A stretch of 64,000 nucleotides of DNA, from contig CATNEN010000033.1 of NCBI GenBank assembly GCA_950097015.1, forward strand, positions 4,712,001 through 4,776,000, given 5' to 3'. The first letter of the stretch is position 1; each line of letters opens with the position of its first letter. Under the pieces are notes generated by a model. That model saw only the letters and a program-made list of their open reading frames with translations, was not told the origin of the DNA and did no database searches. This document shows, one piece after another, positions 50,150 through 62,780 of this stretch. Origin of the DNA: Macrostomum hystrix. Its lineage: Eukaryota > Animalia > Platyhelminthes. The position numbers were made by a program, and so were the translations under genes.

Positions 50150-50828
50150 CCCTTGACCCTAACTCACCTGGCCTTTAACCCCAACTCACCTGGCCTTTAA
50201 CCCCAACTCACCTGGCCTTTAACCCCAACTCACCTGGCCTTTAACCCCAACTCACCTGGCCTTTAACCCCAACTCACCTGGCCTTTAACCCCAACTCACC
50301 TGGCCTTTAACCCCAACTCACCTGGCCTTTAACCCCAACTCAAATGGCCTTTAACCCCAACTCACCTGCCTTTAACCCCAACTCACCTGCCTTTAACCCC
50401 AACTCATATGGCCTTTAACCCCAACTCACCTGCCTTTAACCCCAACTCACCTGGCCTTTAACCCCAACTCAAATGGCCTTTAACCCCAACTCACCTGCCT
50501 TTAACCCCAACTCACCTGGCCTTTAACCCCAACTCACCTGGCCTTTAACCCCAACTCACCTGGCCTTTAACCCCAACTCACCTGGCCTTTAACCCCAACT
50601 CACCTAGCCTTTAACCCCAACTCACCTGGCCTTTAACCCCAACTCACCTGGCCTTTAACCCCAACTCACCTGGCCTTTAACCCCAAATCACCTGGCCTTT
50701 AACCCCAACTCAAATGGCCTTTGACCCCAACTCACCTGCCTTTAACCCCAACTCACCTGGTCTTTAACCCTAACTCACCTGGCCTTTAACCCCAACTCAC
50801 CTGGCCTTTAACCCCAACTCATATGGCC
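50150..50828. repeat. 22-bp minisatellite (AACCCCAACTCACCTGGCCTTT)n
   Basis: About 30 units. Confidence 0.95.
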
Positions 50829-51278
50829 TTTCTTGACTCATCGTTGAAAGCCTTGGAACCCGACCCTTATAAGCTCATTCCCTACCTGTTGGAAATGGTT
50901 TCCATGTACTCGTACGAGTCGTCGCACTCATTGTTCTCACATTGTTCACGCCTTTCCGACGAAGAAAAAAATCAGATTTTAACGAAAAGTTTTCGCAAGC
51001 CAGTTTTTTGCTTTCATTTGCTTTTAACAAAATACGAGCTAAGACTTGGCGCACCCATACCTGGCTTTCGAAGGATAATTAGCATAGCCTTATCAGCTCT
51101 AATTTGAATTTACTGGACCGGACATCGAGGCTGCGACCAGCATGCGGCTCTCAGGTTGTTTTCCAAGCGAGATACTTGCAACTCGATACCCCAAAACCAA
51201 CTAATTATATTTAAAAAGATCTAGAGATGAGAGCAGCACTAGCAAGAGTTGAGGGCAGCTGGAACGTACCTCGGCATC

Positions 51279-53003
51279 ATGCCATCGAAGAGCTGGCGAA
51301 ATCTATTTCTAGTCTTCGTCACGAGCATCTGCATCGCAGCCTCTGTGCAGCCACAGAAGCAACAGCAGCAGCAACAAGATCAACAAGAGGAAGAGAACCC
51401 TGAAGTAATGTACCTCACACTGGAGAACCTTAGCAATGGGAGTCTTTGCTGCCGGCTGAACGACACCTCAGCCAGCCGACTTGTCGACTGCACGGGCTGC
51501 GGCCTAAGACATGTGCCGCTGCTGCATCCGGATCTTCGGCCTGACGCTCTGCTCCTCGCCAGAAACCGCATCCGGGCGCTGATGCCCGGCACCTTCGTCA
51601 ACGCCAGCGGACTACGCCGACTTGACCTGTCGGCGAATGCCCGGCTGGCGCGCCTTCCAGCCGGCTGTCTGGCCGGCGCTGCTGACAGCCTCTTAGAGCT
51701 GGACCTCAGCGACACCGGACTGTCCGACTCCGCCTGCGAAGGTCTCGAAGGTCTGCGGCATCTGCGCCGACTCCGAATGGCCGGACTGCGCCAGCTGGAT
51801 TCGCTGCCCGCCCAGCTGGCTGGCCTGCCGAAGCTGCTGGAGTTGGACGTCTCGGATGGCGGCCTGTCGGTAATCCGGGCCGGTGATTTCCCACCTGTGT
51901 GGAAGCTGGAATCACTCAGGCTGACTCGAACCCAGGTCTACTGGCTCGAGGCTGCTGCGTTTGATCCGTTGAGAGACAGCCTGCGGCAGCTGGAGATCTC
52001 AGCGCCAACCCTGGGCCGAACGCTGGTGAAGGAGGGCGGTTCGGTATTTTCCGGCGCCTGGAACCACGTGCTGCGTCGACTGCCAAAACTGAACAGCCTG
52101 CTTCTCAGTTCCCACCCACCTGTGTTGAATTGCACAGAAGGCGACAGAGTCAAGGGACTCCCTGATCACATGGCCTGGCTAGCAGTGTTGCCGTTGCGCA
52201 GCCTGCGGCGACTCGTTCTGGACGGTAATTGTCTAAGCAGAGCTCCGCCCAGCTTGGGCCGCGAACTACTGCCTGAGTTGCGTGAGCTCAGCCTGGCTGG
52301 CAACCCATTTGTCTGCGTCTGCGGCACAGCGTCCTCTCTCATTCCACCTGTCGGTGTGTCGGGAATCGTCTGTGCGACCTTGGAGGCGATGCTGCTAGGA
52401 CATGTGGATCCCTGCCCCACTCTTCGCCAGCCAGCAACTCCAGCGCCCGTGTTACAGTCGCCTCAGCCGCCCTCGCAACCGCATGCGGGACTAATTATTG
52501 CCACATCCATTGTGACTAGTCTGACCTTCCTGGCTGCAGTGGCAGTTGCTGCTGTCATTGTCTATTATCGGAAATTCGCCGTAGCTGCATCCTCAGCAAT
52601 CTCTGTGGCAGCCTCGAGTGAGACCAAGCAGATCGCAGTCTACGCCGAGTACGAAAGACCCATTGCTGGTGGGTCCAGCTCAGGAGTTGGTGGCGACGCC
52701 TACGAGGTGCTCAATGAGCCATCACTGCCGCCACCGCTTCCTATGCCGACCAGGACAGCTCGTCGCTTCTTTCGTCGGAGCGAGCGACCTCAAGCCACTG
52801 CGAATGACGAGCAGCCGCCGGCCCCGCCACCTCCGCTGCCGCCTCGCCCGCCAGCCGCTCCAGCCGCGCCACCGCCGCGACAATGTCCCAAAACTGTCCC
52901 AAAACCTTTTGGGACTGGCGCTGGAGGCATTGAAAACGCAGCTTACACGCCTGCAGATGACAAAGCCACCTCCGATACTCTGCTCATTGTTGCTCAATTC
53001 TAA
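51279..53003 (+). CDS. Single-exon leucine-rich-repeat transmembrane receptor (574 aa), no TIR
   Basis: ATG at 51279; signal peptide; LRR-NT (CCR..VDCTGCGLRHVP); multiple LxxLxLxxN-type repeats; LRR-CT NPFVCVC; TM; tail with YAEY, YEVL, poly-Pro and NAAY. Confidence 0.9.
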   Translation: MPSKSWRNLFLVFVTSICIAASVQPQKQQQQQQDQQEEENPEVMYLTLENLSNGSLCCRLNDTSASRLVDCTGCGLRHVPLLHPDLRPDALLLARNRIRALMPGTFVNASGLRRLDLSANARLARLPAGCLAGAADSLLELDLSDTGLSDSACEGLEGLRHLRRLRMAGLRQLDSLPAQLAGLPKLLELDVSDGGLSVIRAGDFPPVWKLESLRLTRTQVYWLEAAAFDPLRDSLRQLEISAPTLGRTLVKEGGSVFSGAWNHVLRRLPKLNSLLLSSHPPVLNCTEGDRVKGLPDHMAWLAVLPLRSLRRLVLDGNCLSRAPPSLGRELLPELRELSLAGNPFVCVCGTASSLIPPVGVSGIVCATLEAMLLGHVDPCPTLRQPATPAPVLQSPQPPSQPHAGLIIATSIVTSLTFLAAVAVAAVIVYYRKFAVAASSAISVAASSETKQIAVYAEYERPIAGGSSSGVGGDAYEVLNEPSLPPPLPMPTRTARRFFRRSERPQATANDEQPPAPPPPLPPRPPAAPAAPPPRQCPKTVPKPFGTGAGGIENAAYTPADDKATSDTLLIVAQF

Positions 53004-54562: not shown

Positions 54563-57219
54563 CTATTGAATAGTCGGAGTTGTGGAAATTGTAGCTGGGT
54601 TAGTAGTGTAAAACTGCACGTTGTTCTCCGCGTCCGACCTCACGTACACGGCGTACAGCTTCGGCGCGAACAGGATGGAGAGCAGCAGCGCGTGGGTGAG
54701 GCTGCACGAGAACGCGAGTAGCAGCATCGCGGTGGTCAGCGAGTTGGCCGTGAGGGCGGACGGAACGAAGGCGGACCACAAGAAGAGGCCGGAAACTCCG
54801 CTGGCCAAGATGCACTTTGTGTCGTGAAAGTTGTCGGGCAGAGATCGCGTCTTCAGCGACAGGCCGCAGGTGACAGTCAGGATGAGCAGGTTGCAGCACA
54901 GCGGCGTCCAGAACGCCGTGGCCGCGATCGCGCAGTTCCTCTCGACGAACGGCGGCTTCAGAGAATCTGTCACGATTTGGTTGAGCTGCGCTCTGAGCGG
55001 TCGGAGTGTCGTCACCACGGTGAGCAGAGCGCACTGCAACAGATCATTCGAATGACCTACAATGAAACTGATTCAGCAGGATTACTGCTCAAGTGCTGAT
55101 GTGCGAAAAGACTCACCATCCCAAGGATAACAGTTGTCAGCGCGATGAGCATCGGCTTCTGTCTGGCGAGCCATGGAACCGGACGACCCATCGTGGACGC
55201 AGAGAAAATCAGGTGAACTCGCAGAGTCTTCACCAACTGACTGGCGTAGCAGGCGCTCAGACTGAGCTGGAACGAGCAGTTCAGAGCGTTGCACACTGCA
55301 TCGGAGCTGTCCGCTGTGAACAGAGCCAGACACACAATGCCCAGTAGGTTGCCGCTCATGCAGGTGACGGACAGGTGAATCGACGAGGCCTTGATGAGCT
55401 TGTGCTCTCGTTGGTTGATGAACATGGCCGAAACAATGAGCAGGAAAATCAACAGCACTGCGAGACTAGCAAGCAGCAACGGAAACTGCATGCCGTCTCG
55501 CCACACGTACACCGAGATCGGGTCGCAGCTCAGTCGGTCTGCACTGGGCCAGTGGAACTCGGGACACGACAAGCACGACCTGCCGTCGACGGACACGACC
55601 TCCTGCTTGAAGCAGGCCTTGCATGTGAAGCAGCAGGCGTCAGTGTCAAGTCTGATCTCACCCGCACTGCGTGGAGCACTGCAGAATGAGCTCGGCACCC
55701 TCTGCTGCAGTTGGTGCGGGTCCCAGCTCGAGTTTCTCCACCAACGGATTGGTGTGAGGTCCGAGCCGGTCAGCACAAGACCCGAGCTCTCCGTCCACGT
55801 CCCGACCTTCGTCAGTCGACCGTCCGGCTGCTCTTGACGAACCTCGTACGCCGGAGATCCATCACCATTGGCATCGAAGCTCACGTTTCCAGTTCGCATG
55901 AACGGGAAGCTGGAATTCGACAACAGCCTCATCACCTTCTGACCGGTGACGCACGCACTCACGGCCGTGACGTTCGGCCACACGTCGGCGCAGTCGATGA
56001 TGGCCACTCTCTCGATGCATGCGACCAGGATGCTGATCGAGTCAAGCAGTCTGGCTACCGGAGCCACCACCGTGTCCGTCGACACGCTCGACTTGTCTCC
56101 GATTCGACAGCTTCCAGTTGAGCAGCATGCGGCTGCTTCCTCGGTTGAGCAGTTAAAGAGCAGTCTGAGCAGACGGTCTCCCCATGGGAATCCGAGAACC
56201 TCGCTTGCATTGAGTGAGTGGTAGAACCGGATGAAGTCGGGTGTGGCGAACGATGGAAAGGAGATATAGAGGGCGCCTAAAGTGTAGTGCTTGAACCGAT
56301 CGGAGTTCGTGTCAGAAGTCACGATAACTCCTTTCTGGTTATAAATTTCTCTTAAAATGAGCTCCGGGACGTGCTCGAACAATTCGTACACTAGGAATGC
56401 TTTGAGGCTTGGCTTCTGCCGAATCATTTGCACGACTTCGTCGACGGAAGTGAATGTGTTGATGGCTGTCACAAAGGCAATGCAGATGCTAGCGTTGGTT
56501 CCAGGTAACCGGGCGTTTTGCAGCAAAAGTCTGGTGCTTTGAAGGAGACCACGACCGTACACATCGTCTCTGTAGACGATTGCTAGGTAAGTCCAGTTGA
56601 GGTGCATCACGAGATCGACAGCTGTTTTGGCCTGATAGCTGTCCGGTGGCACCAGCCGGTAGACATTGGGAAACTGTGTCTTGTCGGACAGTGCATCACT
56701 GCTGGCCTCGGTGGCTAATTGCGGCAGGCCATGCGAAGACACCAGGGTGGACAAGAGCTGGGTTGTGCTGCTGTACCAGCCAGCGGCCAGAGCATGGACG
56801 GGGTAAAAGTTTTCACTAAGGATCGGTATCGTCAAATTGCAAAGCGATGTGGGACTCAGACCCGAGTCCCAGATTGGTCTCAAACGCTTCGCTAGGCTCA
56901 CAGTGGCTTGCTGCATCAGACAGGTGTCCAGGAACACCAAGCCAAGCAACTGATCCGCAACAGGTGCTGCCGGTAGAGTGCTTTTCAATCGAGTATTTGC
57001 CCGCTTGACGGCGTAGAACGGCGCAACGGAGCGAAGGAACTCCAGCTCTGAGATAGCGTAGCTGGACACCTGGCACTGGTAGCGGGAGGTCTGCACCACA
57101 GCCAGGCTGAACATGCTTCCATGGTGGCAGGCGATCTGCTGCTTCTGCAGCTGCTGTCCAGATAAGCAGCACAATGTACCGAGCAGAACCCACTGGCCTG
57201 CGCAAGATCGCCAAGACAT
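54563..57219 (-). CDS. Class C GPCR (metabotropic glutamate receptor-like), copy 1, 2 exons, ~857 aa
   Basis: Exons 57219-55117 and 55033-54563 with an 83-nt phase-0 intron GTGAGT..TTGCAG. Signal peptide; Venus flytrap motifs (LSDKTQFPNVYRLVPPDSYQAK, FDANGDG); Cys-rich CCFTCKAC..CLSC; 7TM with KTRSLPDNFHDTK and LFAPKLY. Confidence 0.92.
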
Positions 57220-57619
57220 CGTGTTAGCAAAAGTCTAAACCTGTTTGCTTTTCTATTTGCTATCTAAAGCTTAGTTATTGGATGTCTAATCATTTGGTGA
57301 GAGGAAAACTTTCGGTCAGAACTTCACCCAGGGGATATATGTCTTCTGAAATGGAATGGAATCGGTCGATATGAGGATTCCCTCCACCTGAGTGGTGGGG
57401 AAGAGACATCAGCCTATGAAACGGCAGATGCTGTTTAATTCTACTGTTGACTAGCTCCTGCAATTACCTTTATTTGTTTTTTTCAGCACGAAGCATTTAT
57501 GTTATTGGTTTCCCTTGATCTTTTCCTTTTGTCTTAACTACCATGAATACCGAATGAATTTTGAAGAAGGTTGAGTGAAGCAAATATTTTTACTGCTTTA
57601 ATATATGTGTGATGGAATA

Positions 57620-57955
57620 GGTGTGCGGGCAATGGCACATCATTTAGTGACACTAGACCCGCAGCCAGCGAGGAGGCAATTCTGCCCATTTCGCTGACTC
57701 CTGAGCACACACGCACACGGATACTGTACGCAAGCATACGCTCATACAGGTGTGTACATCTGCCCTGACTTTCTCATCGTCAGGCAGTGTACACTCTCAC
57801 TGTGCCTTGGAGGTTGGCCCTCAAAGGCGTAAATTGCACGACAAGCCCCCAAGCCTTCTCTCAGCGGCTGCGCCCCAAATGAATGTGGCCTCGCCGTGGA
57901 ATCGAACTTAGGGACCGTGGCGCGAGAGGCAAACGCGATAACCGCTCTGCCACCG
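57620..57955 (-). mobile_element. Full-length tRNA-derived SINE
   Basis: A-box GTGGCAGAGCGG (57953-57942) and B-box GTTCGATTCC on the minus strand, with a ~330-bp body. Confidence 0.82.
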
Positions 57956-58021
57956 ACCCCCCTACACGGACCGACCCTTTGCTATCGCAGAGGCATAGAG
58001 TCAATGGCAGAGACTCTGCAG

Positions 58022-58325
58022 AGTCAATGGCAGAGCGGTTATCGCGTTTGCCTCTCGCACTAAGGTCCCTCAGCTCGATTCCATTAAATTGGGGCGCAGC
58101 CGCGGAGAGAAGGCTTGGGGGCTTGTCGTGCAATCTACGCCCTTGAGGGCGTACCTCCAAGGCACAGTGAGAGTGTACACTGCCTGACGATGAGAAAGTC
58201 AGGGCAGATGTACACACCTGTGTGAGCGTATGCCCGTGTACAGTATCTGTGTGCGTGTGTGCTCGGGATTCAGCGGAATGGGCAGAATTGCCTCCTGGCT
58301 GCGGGTCTAGTGTCACCAAATGATG
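58022..58325 (+). mobile_element. Full-length tRNA-derived SINE, inverted relative to its neighbour
   Basis: A-box TGGCAGAGCGG and a degenerate B-box GCTCGATTCC. The body is the reverse complement of 57620-57955 with scattered differences. Confidence 0.82.
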
Positions 58326-60144
58326 TGCCCAAAGTTAGTCAGTAGCCAGAGGCAACTTGACAGGTTTTAAGAACTCTCCCACCCGAGTTTTTTCAACTTG
58401 CTCAGAGAAAGTGGAACAGTTTCGATATGGATATTTGAGTGTGTCCACTCCCAGTCCACTGTCCACTCCCAGTGTAGCTTGTCGGTTTTGCTACGTATCA
58501 GTTTGCAGCAACTGCTGGTAGCTTGCAAAAAAGTTTAACACACATTATCAGCCTCATATCTTCGTCAAATTCATTCTACAGTTATGCATGATCATTTTAA
58601 TGCTTTTAGACGCTCTGGTCGATCAGACACGTAGCAAGTCTGCTATCTAACAGGAATACTCGGTCAAATTAGTTTGCGTGTTACATTAAACTTGTATCGA
58701 CTGCTAAGCAGCTAACTGAAAGATTTGTGAATGCTTTGGTAAATAATTCGTATTTAGCTAATGGCAGCAATCAGGACATTTTGATCTAAATTTCTAGGAT
58801 TAGTAGATCCACTGATTGTAACAATTCCCAATCGGTTTTACTTTCCATTAAAGTTCTAATGGAATCCACCGATTAGCTGTGTTTTTCGCGACTGATACTT
58901 AACAGTAGCAAGGCTATTATGCCTCCTGGGGATAGACCACGGAGGGTATTAAGAGTCAAATATCCACTGCCTACTTCACGTTGAATATCCCGACGATACC
59001 GTTGCTTTGTGATTCTGAAAGTTGCTTCGTTGGATAGAGCGAAAATTTCTTGCCCATTTGTTAGATTTCCATGGCGATTGGCTGAATATTTTGGGAGATA
59101 CAGAAAAAAATGTGCTATTTTCCCAAATACCCTCGTTGCTTTTCTACTGTTAAAGCTTGGCTCTTGTGATAGGAAAATTTTCGAATGAAAATGCTCCCTT
59201 TGATTCTGCCTCACTGGTCAAGGTGGTCATGCTAAGATGGGGCAGAGGCTGGCTAAACAGAAGCACTCGCCATTACCTGTACCTTTGATTGTATTTTCGG
59301 ATTCCATTTTTTTCAGCTCTTTTGGCGTCTCCTTGAGACCGGTAGATTCCATCGGCGTTTGTTTTAAAATAAGTACGTCCCACTTCAGACGTCCCACTCA
59401 GGTAGCAGTCTGTAGTCGCTTCCCCATCAAGGCGTGACCATAAAAGTTATGATTCGTTTTCTAAAAGTATGTGGGTGTACACTTTCAAAATGGACTATGT
59501 ACGTCTTCACTTTTTTACTCAATTCCGAGGGACTGCAGTAGCGAACAGGCTGTATGAATTATGGATGTTGCTGAGTGTGTTGGTGAGATTGAGAACCATC
59601 AGACAATAGAACCAGCAGTAATCGAGGACATCTGCACTTTCCGAAATTTTCACAAAAAACTTTCCTAATTAATTGTTTGCCTCTAACAGACACCGCTGTT
59701 TCATAACAATATTTTACCTTCTATGTACTACTGTTAGTAATTATATGTAGGCAGGCATTCTATAAAAAGGGATAGTGGCTTTCTAACTTTCTTCTAGACT
59801 TCTAGAACATTACAACCGAAATTCAAGGAATTCTGAGCAGCTCATATTTCATTGAATTGAAAATTGCATGAAAGAATTCACCAAATAAAAAAGCCATTGT
59901 CTGAGGAAACTTAATAGCTTTTATCTAGCTTACATGCAGGTTTTGCAGCCAATTTGATAACTGCGGTCAATGAAGGCTTAGTGACGCTGGTGCACTTTCC
60001 CTTCTACAAATCGATAGCCCAGATTGACGCGCCACGCTTCATTGGTCGCATTTCGGGCGTGGCCTCGATTGACTTTGACGAGGCTATAAAAGCCAGAATC
60101 ACTTTCCTGCTAACAAGTCTGCATAGAAGAGATTCGCACGCAGG

Positions 60145-62780
60145 ATGGCAGAACAAGCAGTCGCAGTGCTCAGTTTCGTTCTGCTGCTACAGTCCGCTGC
60201 TCAATTTGTGAACTACCAGCCCAATCAGCTGATCTGCACACCTGGTGGCATTATTAACCTGGCCGTGGTCGAGAGCACACAGTTCTACTGCGACAGACCC
60301 GACACGGCGATGACCGAGTCCGTCTTCCTGCGCAACCTGGCGCCTCACTTCGCGGCCAAGCTCGTCAACGCGAACTGGAGTAGACGGGGTCTGAGCATCG
60401 GCCTGTTGCATCTTGACCCTTGCTACTCTGACCGTCGTATTGTCGACCTGTTGAAGCGGGTCAGGCCTGCATGGACCAGTCCCAATGGACTCGGCTTCGG
60501 AGGCGGATTCTGTCATCAGCAGGTAAACAGCCTCAGAGAACAGTTCTACTTTGTTCACGCAGTCATCTCTGGTTGGAGGAGCAGCGAGACACAGCTAGTG
60601 TCCAGCCAGGTGTCTCTCTACTCCATGCCTCAGGTGGGCAACGAGTGCAGCAGCGACGCTCTGTCCGACAAGTCGCTCTACCCAAACTTGTTCCGTCTGG
60701 TCGCACCAGACAGTTATCAGGCCAAAGCAGTGGTGGATCTTGTGCAGCATTTCAACTGGACACTGGTGGGCATTGTGCACAGGGACGACGTTTATGGGAG
60801 GGGCCTGCTGCAGAACACTCGACTGCTGCTGCAACAAACAACCAAGGGGCGAAGAGGCACGTGTCTAGCGTTTTCTTTTCCAGTGAACGTCTTCTTCACG
60901 ATCGAAGATTGGCATGTTCAATTGAATAAGTTTCCGCACCTTCGTGTTTTTCTAATGTTTGAAACATTCAGCAGCATTCCCAACTTTGTATTCGAGGCTA
61001 TTAGCATTCGTAATAATATAATTGTGACCACTGATACCAACTCAGTGGCTTACAAGCATTACACTTTGGGAGCGCTCTACATTTCGTTCCCGCGATTCGC
61101 CACACCCGACTTCATCCGGTTCTACCACTCACTCAATGCAAGCGAGGTTCTCGGATTCCCATGGGGAGACCGTCTGCTCAGACTGCTCTTCAACTGCTCA
61201 ACCGAGGAAGCAGCCGCATGCTGCTCAACTGGAAGCTGTCGAATCGGAGACAAGTCGAGCGTGTCGACGGACACGGTGGTGGCTCCGGTAGCCAGACTGC
61301 TTGACTCGATCAGCATCCTGGTCGCATGCATCGAGAGAGTGGCCATCATCGACTGCGCCGACGTGTGGCCGAACGTCACGGCCGTGAGTGCGTGCGTCAC
61401 CGGTCAGAAGGTGATGAGGCTGTTGTCGAATTCCAGCTTCCCGTTCATGCGAACTGGAAACGTGAGCTTCGATGCCAATGGTGATGGATCTCCGGCGTAC
61501 GAGGTTCGTCAAGAGCAGCCGGACGGTCGACTGACGAAGGTCGGGACGTGGACGGAGAGCTCGGGTCTTGTGCTGACCGGCTCGGACCTCACACCAATCC
61601 GTTGGTGGAGAAACTCGAGCTGGGACCCGCACCAACTGCAGCAGAGGGTGCCGAGCTCATTCTGCAGTGCTCCACGCAGTGCGGGTGAGATCAGACTTGA
61701 CACTGACGCCTGCTGCTTCACATGCAAGGCCTGCTTCAAGCAGGAGGTCGTGTCCGTCGACGGCAGGTCGTGCTTGTCGTGTCCCGAGTTCCACTGGCCC
61801 AGTGCAGACCGACTGAGCTGCGACCCGATCTCGGTGTACGTGTGGCGAGACGGCATGCAGTTTCCGTTGCTGCTTGCTAGTCTCGCAGTGCTGTTGATTT
61901 TCCTGCTCATTGTTTCGGCCATGTTCATCAACCAACGAGAGCACAAGCTCATCAAGGCCTCGTCGATTCACCTGTCCGTCACCTGCATGAGCGGCAACCT
62001 ACTGGGCATTGTGTGTCTGGCTCTGTTCACAGCGGACAGCTCCGATGCAGTGTGCAACGCTCTGAACTGCTCGTTCCAGCTCAGTCTGAGCGCCTGCTAC
62101 GCCAGTCAGTTGGTGAAGACTCTGCGAGTTCACCTGATTTTCTCTGCGTCCACGATGGGTCGTCCGGTTCCATGGCTCGCCAGACAGAAGCCGATGCTCA
62201 TCGCGCTGACAACTGTTATCCTTGGGATGGTGAGTCTTTTCGCACATCAGCACTTGAGCAGTAATCCTGCTGAATCAGTTTCATTGTAGGTCATTCGAAT
62301 GATCTGTTGCAGTGCGCTCTGCTCACCGTGGTGACGACACTCCGACCGCTCAGAGCGCAGCTCAACCAAATCGTGACAGATTCTCTGAAGCCGCCGTTCG
62401 TCGAGAGGAACTGCGCGATCGCGGCCACGGCGTTCTGGACGCCGCTGTGCTGCAACCTGCTCATCCTGACTGTCACCTGCGGCCTGTCGCTGAAGACGCG
62501 ATCTCTGCCCGACAACTTTCACGACACAAAGTGCATCTTGGCCAGCGGAGTTTCCGGCCTCTTCTTGTGGTCCGCCTTCGTTCCGTCCGCCCTCACGGCC
62601 AACTCGCTGACCACCGCGATGCTGCTACTCGCGTTCTCGTGCAGCCTCACCCACGCGCTGCTGCTCTCCATCCTGTTCGCGCCGAAGCTGTACGCCGTGT
62701 ACGCGAGGTCCGACGCGGAGAACAACGTGCAGTTTTACACCGATAACCATGCAACTACAGTCACGCCTTCAAGGTTTTAA
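60145..62780 (+). CDS. Class C GPCR (mGluR-like), copy 2, 2 exons, ~850 aa
   Basis: Exons 60145-62229 and 62313-62780; same architecture and same 83-nt intron as copy 1. Confidence 0.92.

Follow-up and report, generated by a model that had tools for sequence, protein, structure and literature searches.

Region-restricted gene conversion that is opposed by selection has been described for the RHCE/RHD genes and for protocadherin clusters (PMC3966226), and among the clustered OlfC genes of catfish, which code for class C receptors, gene conversion was detected statistically (PMC6588630). The locus described here is a cluster of genes for G protein-coupled receptors (GPCRs) of class C in the flatworm Macrostomum hystrix, two of which (A and B) lie within a 64,000-nucleotide (nt) stretch of contig CATNEN010000033.1 (assembly GCA_950097015.1; C33:4712001-4776000, forward strand). 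This whole stretch is referred to as the window, and coordinates given without a contig count from its first letter; the genome searched comprised 220.45 Mb on 42 contigs. Genes A and B and a third gene, C, were found to share one nearly identical internal tract, R3, and are likely to be old paralogs that have undergone recurrent, region-restricted interlocus gene conversion over it. Gene conversion is a known kind of process, of which the cluster is a good example; no new principle is involved.

As in the protocadherin variable exons and RHCE/RHD, paralogs of one cluster appear homogenised over one part of the coding sequence and diverse over the other (PMC3966226). Unlike the protocadherins, the flatworm genes are complete class C GPCRs without alternatively spliced variable exons, and both known systems differ from the flatworm cluster in that the latter has an inverted member, is homogenised over ~60% of the gene, and has one limit within the Venus flytrap and the other shortly after the last transmembrane helix (TM7), both of which recur in a distantly related cluster. 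The OlfC and V2R-like genes share with it the receptor class (flytrap, nine-cysteine domain and seven-transmembrane (7TM) region), the clustering of paralogs and signs of conversion. The flatworm genes have two exons and are not orthologs of OlfC or V2R; in the OlfC study conversion is treated as a nuisance for tree building and, as far as its available part extends, no domain-delimited constant cassette is reported (PMC6588630). With the metabotropic glutamate receptors (mGluRs) the flatworm genes share the domain order, but similarity is low, Lys389 (K389) of mGluR3 aligns with Val, the cytoplasmic tail is very short, and A and B have one cysteine fewer in the nine-cysteine domain. For Macrostomum, a literature search turned up no paper that deals with gene conversion or with clusters of class C GPCR genes.

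Gene models and the shared tract

On the predicted gene models, A and B are intact two-exon class C GPCR genes with a Venus flytrap, a probable nine-cysteine domain and a 7TM region. Gene B, on the forward strand, has an open frame of 850 amino acids (aa) in exon 1 (60145-62229) and exon 2 (62313-62780, stop codon included), which are separated by an 83-nt intron (62230-62312, GTGAGT...TTGCAG). Gene A is its mirror image on the reverse strand, with an open frame of 857 aa composed of exon 1 (57219-55117), coding for signal peptide, Venus flytrap, nine-cysteine domain and TM1-TM3, and exon 2 (55033-54563, stop codon included), coding for TM4-TM7 and the tail; the 83-nt intron between them (55034-55116) is identical to those of B and C. 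Database searches were done exon by exon, and joined proteins were used for codon analysis only. Against Pfam, ANF_receptor was matched with E 3e-25 (aa 133-455 in B, aa 141-461 in A), and the 7tm_3 profile of 251 positions was complete in both genes, with positions 9-135 in exon 1 (E 5e-17) and 129-251 in exon 2 (E 7e-14); the NCD3G match of both genes (E 4e-8, 32-33 bits) was below the Pfam gathering score of 38.9 bits. The best relatives of solved structure were mGluR3 and mGluR5 (E 2e-36 and below), the match to mGluR3 (8tqb, E 2e-36) spanning residues 69-677 of the 695-residue exon-1 query.

A repeat search of the window returned two inverted arms, 54591-56325 and 61021-62755, with 98% identity. 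Read in the register in which paired positions sum to 117346, identity climbed from ~0.3 to 1.0 between 61024 and 61124 and dropped again past 62724, and 61096-62740 on the forward strand, which is R3 of gene B (aa 318-836 plus the intron), differed from 56250-54606 on the reverse strand, which is R3 of gene A, by 3 mismatches in 1645 nt, at 61191, 62704 and 62711. The longest perfect run between the two genes measured 1512 nt (61192-62703); after shuffling of the positions of the A-B differences in 10000 rounds, the longest identical run was 88 nt. Synonymous divergence (dS, Nei-Gojobori) between A and B was 1 to infinity, i.e. saturated, over the first ~315-317 codons and 0-0.005 over R3, the intron behaving likewise. 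In the variable head of gene A (aa 1-323, 56251-57219, reverse strand) dS to B was ~2 or saturated at an aa identity of 0.44-0.47, and the 13 residues directly upstream of the tract (KHYTLGALYISFP) were the same protein in A and B with 9 third positions differing. At the other end, the last ~13 residues were different in A, B and C, the variable C-terminal tail of B being located at 62741-62780 (forward strand). The preliminary description had reported the inverted copies with this coordinate sum, the inclusion of the intron, the stretch that is identical in protein and different at synonymous sites, and the differing tails, all of which was reproduced by the alignment and by dS along the coding sequence.

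A genome search with the tract returned a third copy, 99% identical and located outside the window at C33:4790140-4791782 (forward strand), and no further donor, the number of tract copies in the genome being 3 in total. This copy belongs to gene C (C33:4789189-4791824, L006:3189-5824, forward strand), which starts 14.4 kb downstream of the stop codon of B and has the same two-exon structure with an 83-nt intron; frames and splice sites were intact in all three genes, and the cluster order is A(-) B(+) C(+). The head-to-head pair of the preliminary description is therefore part of a trio.

In a three-way alignment, C differed from A and B at 14 sites of R3 (AB|C), A was private at 3 (BC|A) and B at 0 (AC|B), the A-private sites all lying near the tract ends, at distances of 95, 37 and 30 nt. 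Over R1 (aa 1-226; 60145-60822, forward strand), B and C were the same apart from 2-3 differences (dS 0) and stood together against A at 268 sites, with an A-B dS of ~2 and an aa identity of 0.47. The core of R2 (~aa 227-305; 60823-61059, forward strand) formed a variable island of ~79 codons in which all three genes differed, and over aa 219-317 B and C showed a dS of 0.68 and a non-synonymous divergence (dN) of 0.20 (dN/dS ~0.3). Similarity between B and C began exactly at the ATG and stopped short of the stop codon, and no alignment was possible between the copies in the flanks outside the coding sequence. The head of A was present in the genome as a single copy, with a next best match of 47% identity.

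Evidence for the proposed gene conversion

Several marks of gene conversion were found together at this locus: synonymous and intronic divergence drop abruptly, adjacent segments have different genealogies, and the flanks show no similarity. Purifying selection on the protein was ruled out as the cause of the tract identity, which extends to the synonymous sites and the intron. A recent duplication of whole genes was excluded since all identity blocks end within the coding sequence and the island between B and C is old, and hidden donor cassettes elsewhere in the genome were ruled out by the counts of tract copies and A heads given above.

An unlinked paralog, E (C39:9523300-9526415, minus strand), which has an extra intron within the 7TM region, was used as a control. 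Its aa identity over R1, R2 and R3 was 0.44, 0.40 and 0.40 to A and 0.43, 0.39 and 0.40 to B, and because E is uniformly ~40% identical, R3 is not a slow-evolving region. The view of the cassette as just the best-conserved region of the protein was rejected on the same grounds, E being as diverged there (0.40) as in the head (0.39-0.44), and the most conserved stretch of the family falls in R1. Judged by E, A and B would be ~40% identical in R3 without exchange. As conversion is unable to start at ~40% identity, the simplest history is one in which homogenisation of R3 never stopped since the duplication while R1 and R2 diverged, and we infer that conversion has been continuous since that time. 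Separate trees of heads and tracts were in line with this history: the R1+R2 tree left A, E and (B,C) as an unresolved trichotomy, the branches being 0.65-0.9 long, and for R3 the branches of A, B and C were near zero and that of E was 1.5.

The G+C content at third codon positions (GC3) of A, B and C rose from 0.63-0.65 in R1+R2 to 0.73-0.74 in R3 (Fisher p 0.005-0.016), and in D1-D3, three genes of the second cluster treated below, a value of 0.63-0.65 gave way at the tract start to one of 0.86-0.87 (p 1e-10 to 1e-14); the values for E were 0.60 in R1+R2 and 0.59 in R3 (p 0.74). A GC3 excess confined to the cassette of the clustered genes fits long-term GC-biased conversion. Together with a dS of ~0 in exons and intron next to saturation upstream, with flanks that cannot be aligned and with the lack of another donor, it supports the earlier proposal that non-reciprocal exchange has homogenised a defined tract of old paralogs.

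In the proposed mechanism, recurrent non-reciprocal interlocus conversion would keep a cassette near-identical in A, B and C, with the intron being carried along. The cassette would extend from the hinge crossing of the Venus flytrap (B aa 318) over the second half of lobe 1, the nine-cysteine domain and the whole 7TM region to ~13 residues past TM7. For A and B, whose orientation is inverted, conversion would rest on fold-back pairing, for B and C on their arrangement as direct repeats. Conversion would spare the N-terminal segments of the flytrap and the cytoplasmic tail, which have diverged to saturation, with the exception of the first 226 codons, which would also have been exchanged between B and C. 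Each gene is a mosaic of the exchangeable blocks R1, R2, R3 and tail. The latest event between A and B, covering at most 61192-62703, would be nested within older ones, which fits the positions of the A-private sites. The limits may be held by the loss of homology, by selection against the overwriting of specificity-determining flytrap segments, or by both.

Limits of the tract in a second cluster and in the protein

Contig C3 was found to carry four more class C GPCR genes, D1-D4, which are paralogous to B at an aa identity of ~33% (C3:3366683-3393650 and C3:3140740-3143197). D3 (C3:3366683-3370411, minus strand) carries a 1.35-kb insertion at the intron, and D1 (from C3:3383305) and D2 (from C3:3391189) are on the plus strand, so that D1-D3 have the same order (-,+,+) as A, B and C. 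D4 (C3:3140740-3143197, minus strand) is located ~225 kb from the others; its frame is shifted by a 2-nt deletion within the tract, and it probably represents a pseudogene. In this cluster, diverged heads are likewise followed by a tract of 97-100% identity that reaches to just before the stop codon (dS 0.01-0.08); in addition, R2 is shared by D1 and D4 (dS 0.09), and part of R1 by D1 and D2.

When the proteins of the two clusters were placed in one alignment, the 5' limit was located at aligned column 366 (B aa 318) for A-B, 354 for B-C, 368 for the D1-D3 pair and 373 for D1-D2 and D2-D3, all of these positions sitting at a conserved F-x-T-P-D motif. At the 3' end, dense differences started in exon-2 column 147 for A-B, 145-147 for B-C, 144-146 for D1-D3, D1-D4 and D3-D4, and 136 for D1-D2. 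Because the heads of the two clusters were reciprocally monophyletic (100/100 support), the limits look independently acquired; the chance of limits this close was ~0.006 and ~0.008 under uniform placement over ~850 codons, values that are indicative only, as the clusters share one conservation profile. A boundary inherited from an ancestral (-,+,+) cluster was unsupported, given the same monophyly and the placement of A, which is not nearer to D3 than it is to D1, although older conversion in the heads could mask such a boundary.

The position of the 5' limit in the receptor was determined with a HMMER alignment to the mGluR3 structure 8tqb_A, in which H328 is the counterpart of B aa 318 and D301 that of B D297. 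Lobe 2 of mGluR1 is taken by us to comprise residues 206-343, which would place residue 328 of mGluR3 where the chain returns from lobe 2 to lobe 1. For T1R2, cleft residues 277-307 have been assigned to lobe 2 and 382-383 to lobe 1 (PMC3335050), and the hinge-crossing placement is consistent with these data. On this alignment, R1 would correspond to the first segment of lobe 1 and the start of lobe 2, R2 to the core of lobe 2, and the constant cassette to the last strand of lobe 2, the second segment of lobe 1, the nine-cysteine domain, the 7TM region and ~13 residues after TM7. The tract start lies inside the ANF_receptor match, and ~170 flytrap residues are constant. The earlier formula of a variable ligand-binding half joined to an identical signalling half is therefore only approximately right, as these constant flytrap residues, the variable cytoplasmic tail and the first 226 codons common to B and C depart from it.

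In the same alignment, S151, T174, D194, Y222 and D301 of mGluR3, presumably the residues that bind the alpha-amino-acid moiety, correspond to S, S, D, Y and D in B. Opposite K389, the residue that binds glutamate's distal carboxylate, B has Val378, a tentative assignment in a stretch of low similarity. Since the alpha-amino-acid positions are kept and K389 aligns with Val in this one alignment, the ligands may be amino-acid-like but not glutamate itself, in which the receptors would resemble several chemoreceptors of class C.

Within the cassette, the nine-cysteine domain contains all conserved cysteines in C, E and D1-D3, and A and B are without the second one. At codon 511 (61675-61677, forward strand; mirror position 55669-55671 in A), A and B have Arg, and C, E, D1-D3 and mGluR3 have the conserved Cys, for which reason the state of A and B is regarded as derived. 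Three amino-acid changes that set A and B apart from C fall within 11 residues, Arg511 among them; at aa 501, C matches the D genes as well. Arg511 lies inside the perfect A-B tract and is present on both genes.

Alternative readings were weighed with both clusters in view. According to the first, conversion is real and its limits are neutral, marking the loss of homology; no selection would favour a sensor that varies on a transducer that stays constant, and redundancy or partial decay of the genes is possible. A dN/dS below 1 in the variable parts, the loss of an invariant cysteine in both A and B and the retention of the tract in D4 despite its frameshift agree with such neutrality, and a boundary would maintain itself once homology is lost; it is nevertheless somewhat unlikely, as two clusters with reciprocally monophyletic heads have both limits at matching aligned positions, give or take 2-3 codons, the 5' limit coincides with a structural border of the flytrap (by the mGluR3 alignment and the lobe limits assumed above), and frames and splice sites are intact throughout the trio. 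According to another reading, a modular diversification, at least 2 independent clusters would have conversion confined to the part between the hinge crossing of the flytrap and a point shortly after TM7, with R1, R2 and the tail kept distinct and occasionally swapped as blocks and the limits held by selection; this we regard as doubtful.

Several observations weigh against recurrent conversion or the selection tied to it. Selection for receptor diversity, which we infer, is met by a dN/dS of ~0.25-0.3 in the variable parts. The assembly, made from inbred line SR1 with PacBio reads and canu, was polished with Arrow and Pilon (PMC10468722), and as such a step can remove minor differences where copies are almost the same, the number of 3 mismatches may be an underestimate. 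A word search of a collection of 5.8 billion proteins with exon 1 of B returned no protein at E <= 1e-20, neither an ortholog from another species, as the classical test of concerted evolution would require, nor a protein of its own genome. The 83-nt intron has 43% GC, the GC excess being limited to third codon positions, and among the 14 differences of A/B to C the bias from weak (A, T) to strong (G, C) bases was not significant (strong bases in A/B 8:4). Finally, a single replacement event could be considered for gene A in particular.

Extended to the whole cluster, the last point becomes a one-off recent replacement, in which the 3' two-thirds of one gene were copied once into a diverged paralog, e.g. 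by template switching at short conserved motifs; the identity would then tell how recent this event was. The near-perfect identity of A and B and the adjacency of the tract ends to conserved motifs (F-x-T-P-D and, shortly after, P-K-L/V-Y-A) would suit such an event, and had R3 ever reached the divergence seen in E (40% aa identity), homologous conversion would have been unable to start. The trio would, however, need at least 2-3 in-frame events with nearly equal ends, and the four-gene D cluster more; divergence is graded, with 3 and 14 differences here and a dS of 0.01-0.08 in the D cluster, the A-private differences near the tract edges fit nested events, and the tract-confined GC3 excess needs many rounds of conversion, which makes a one-off replacement improbable. 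An artefact of assembly or polishing, i.e. collapsed or cross-polished paralogs or a fold-back chimeric read, is very improbable, for although short-read polishing, as applied to this PacBio/canu assembly with Arrow and Pilon (PMC10468722), can homogenise near-identical repeats, a divergence of ~50% cannot be polished into identity, the 1.6-kb arms are 4.7 kb apart (those of a missed-adapter palindrome would abut) and anchored on both sides in unique sequence coding for two different intact open reading frames (ORFs), copy C at a distance of 17 kb retains 14 differences and the D copies 1-3%, showing that the assembly resolves such paralogs, and the pattern recurs on another contig. Recurrent, region-restricted gene conversion is hence preferred.

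Surroundings of the genes and meaning of the mosaic

The start codons of the divergent genes A and B are separated by a spacer of 2925 nt (57220-60144), which contains two inverted copies of a ~330-bp interspersed repeat, forming a near-palindrome (57634-58329; 95-97% identity to genome-wide copies). This repeat has a very high copy number, with > 5000 first-look candidates in the genome. A bidirectional promoter shared by A and B, a heterodimer of their products and a role as chemoreceptors were put forward in the preliminary description as possibilities, of which the sequence shows the head-to-head spacing. About 1.6 kb beyond the 3' end of A, a single-exon ORF (51249-53003, forward strand) codes for 584 aa with leucine-rich repeats (LRR_8, LRR_4), a transmembrane stretch and a proline-rich tail, and a tandem array with a period of ~66 nt and self-matches of 93-95% identity is located at 50150-50831. 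The spacer between B and C holds an ORF for a Tc1/mariner-type transposase (HTH_48, HTH_32, DDE_3; C33:4787524-4788606, L006:1524-2606, forward strand), which ends 583 nt upstream of the start codon of C. On the other side, 133 nt after the stop codon of C, a Pao/BEL long terminal repeat (LTR) retrotransposon begins (C33:4791957-4798873, L006:5957 to L007:2873), with flanking direct repeats of 297 nt (99.3% identical) and a pol ORF containing Peptidase_A17, RVT_1 and an integrase zinc domain.

The locus shows a transducing module that co-evolves among paralogs while the ligand-binding pieces drift apart, and the units of exchange cross textbook domain borders, being cut at the hinge inside the Venus flytrap. 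The limits are unusually sharp and recur in a second cluster, and with limits shared by two distant clusters it becomes testable whether they are set by functional selection or by the loss of homology. At codon 511, conversion is seen to spread a radical change, the loss of a disulfide cysteine, between paralogs. If true, the modular scheme would yield ligand specificities in a combinatorial way on a single co-evolving transducer. The three genes A, B and C represent three natural chimeras for the mapping of ligand specificity in an uncharacterised family of flatworm receptors.

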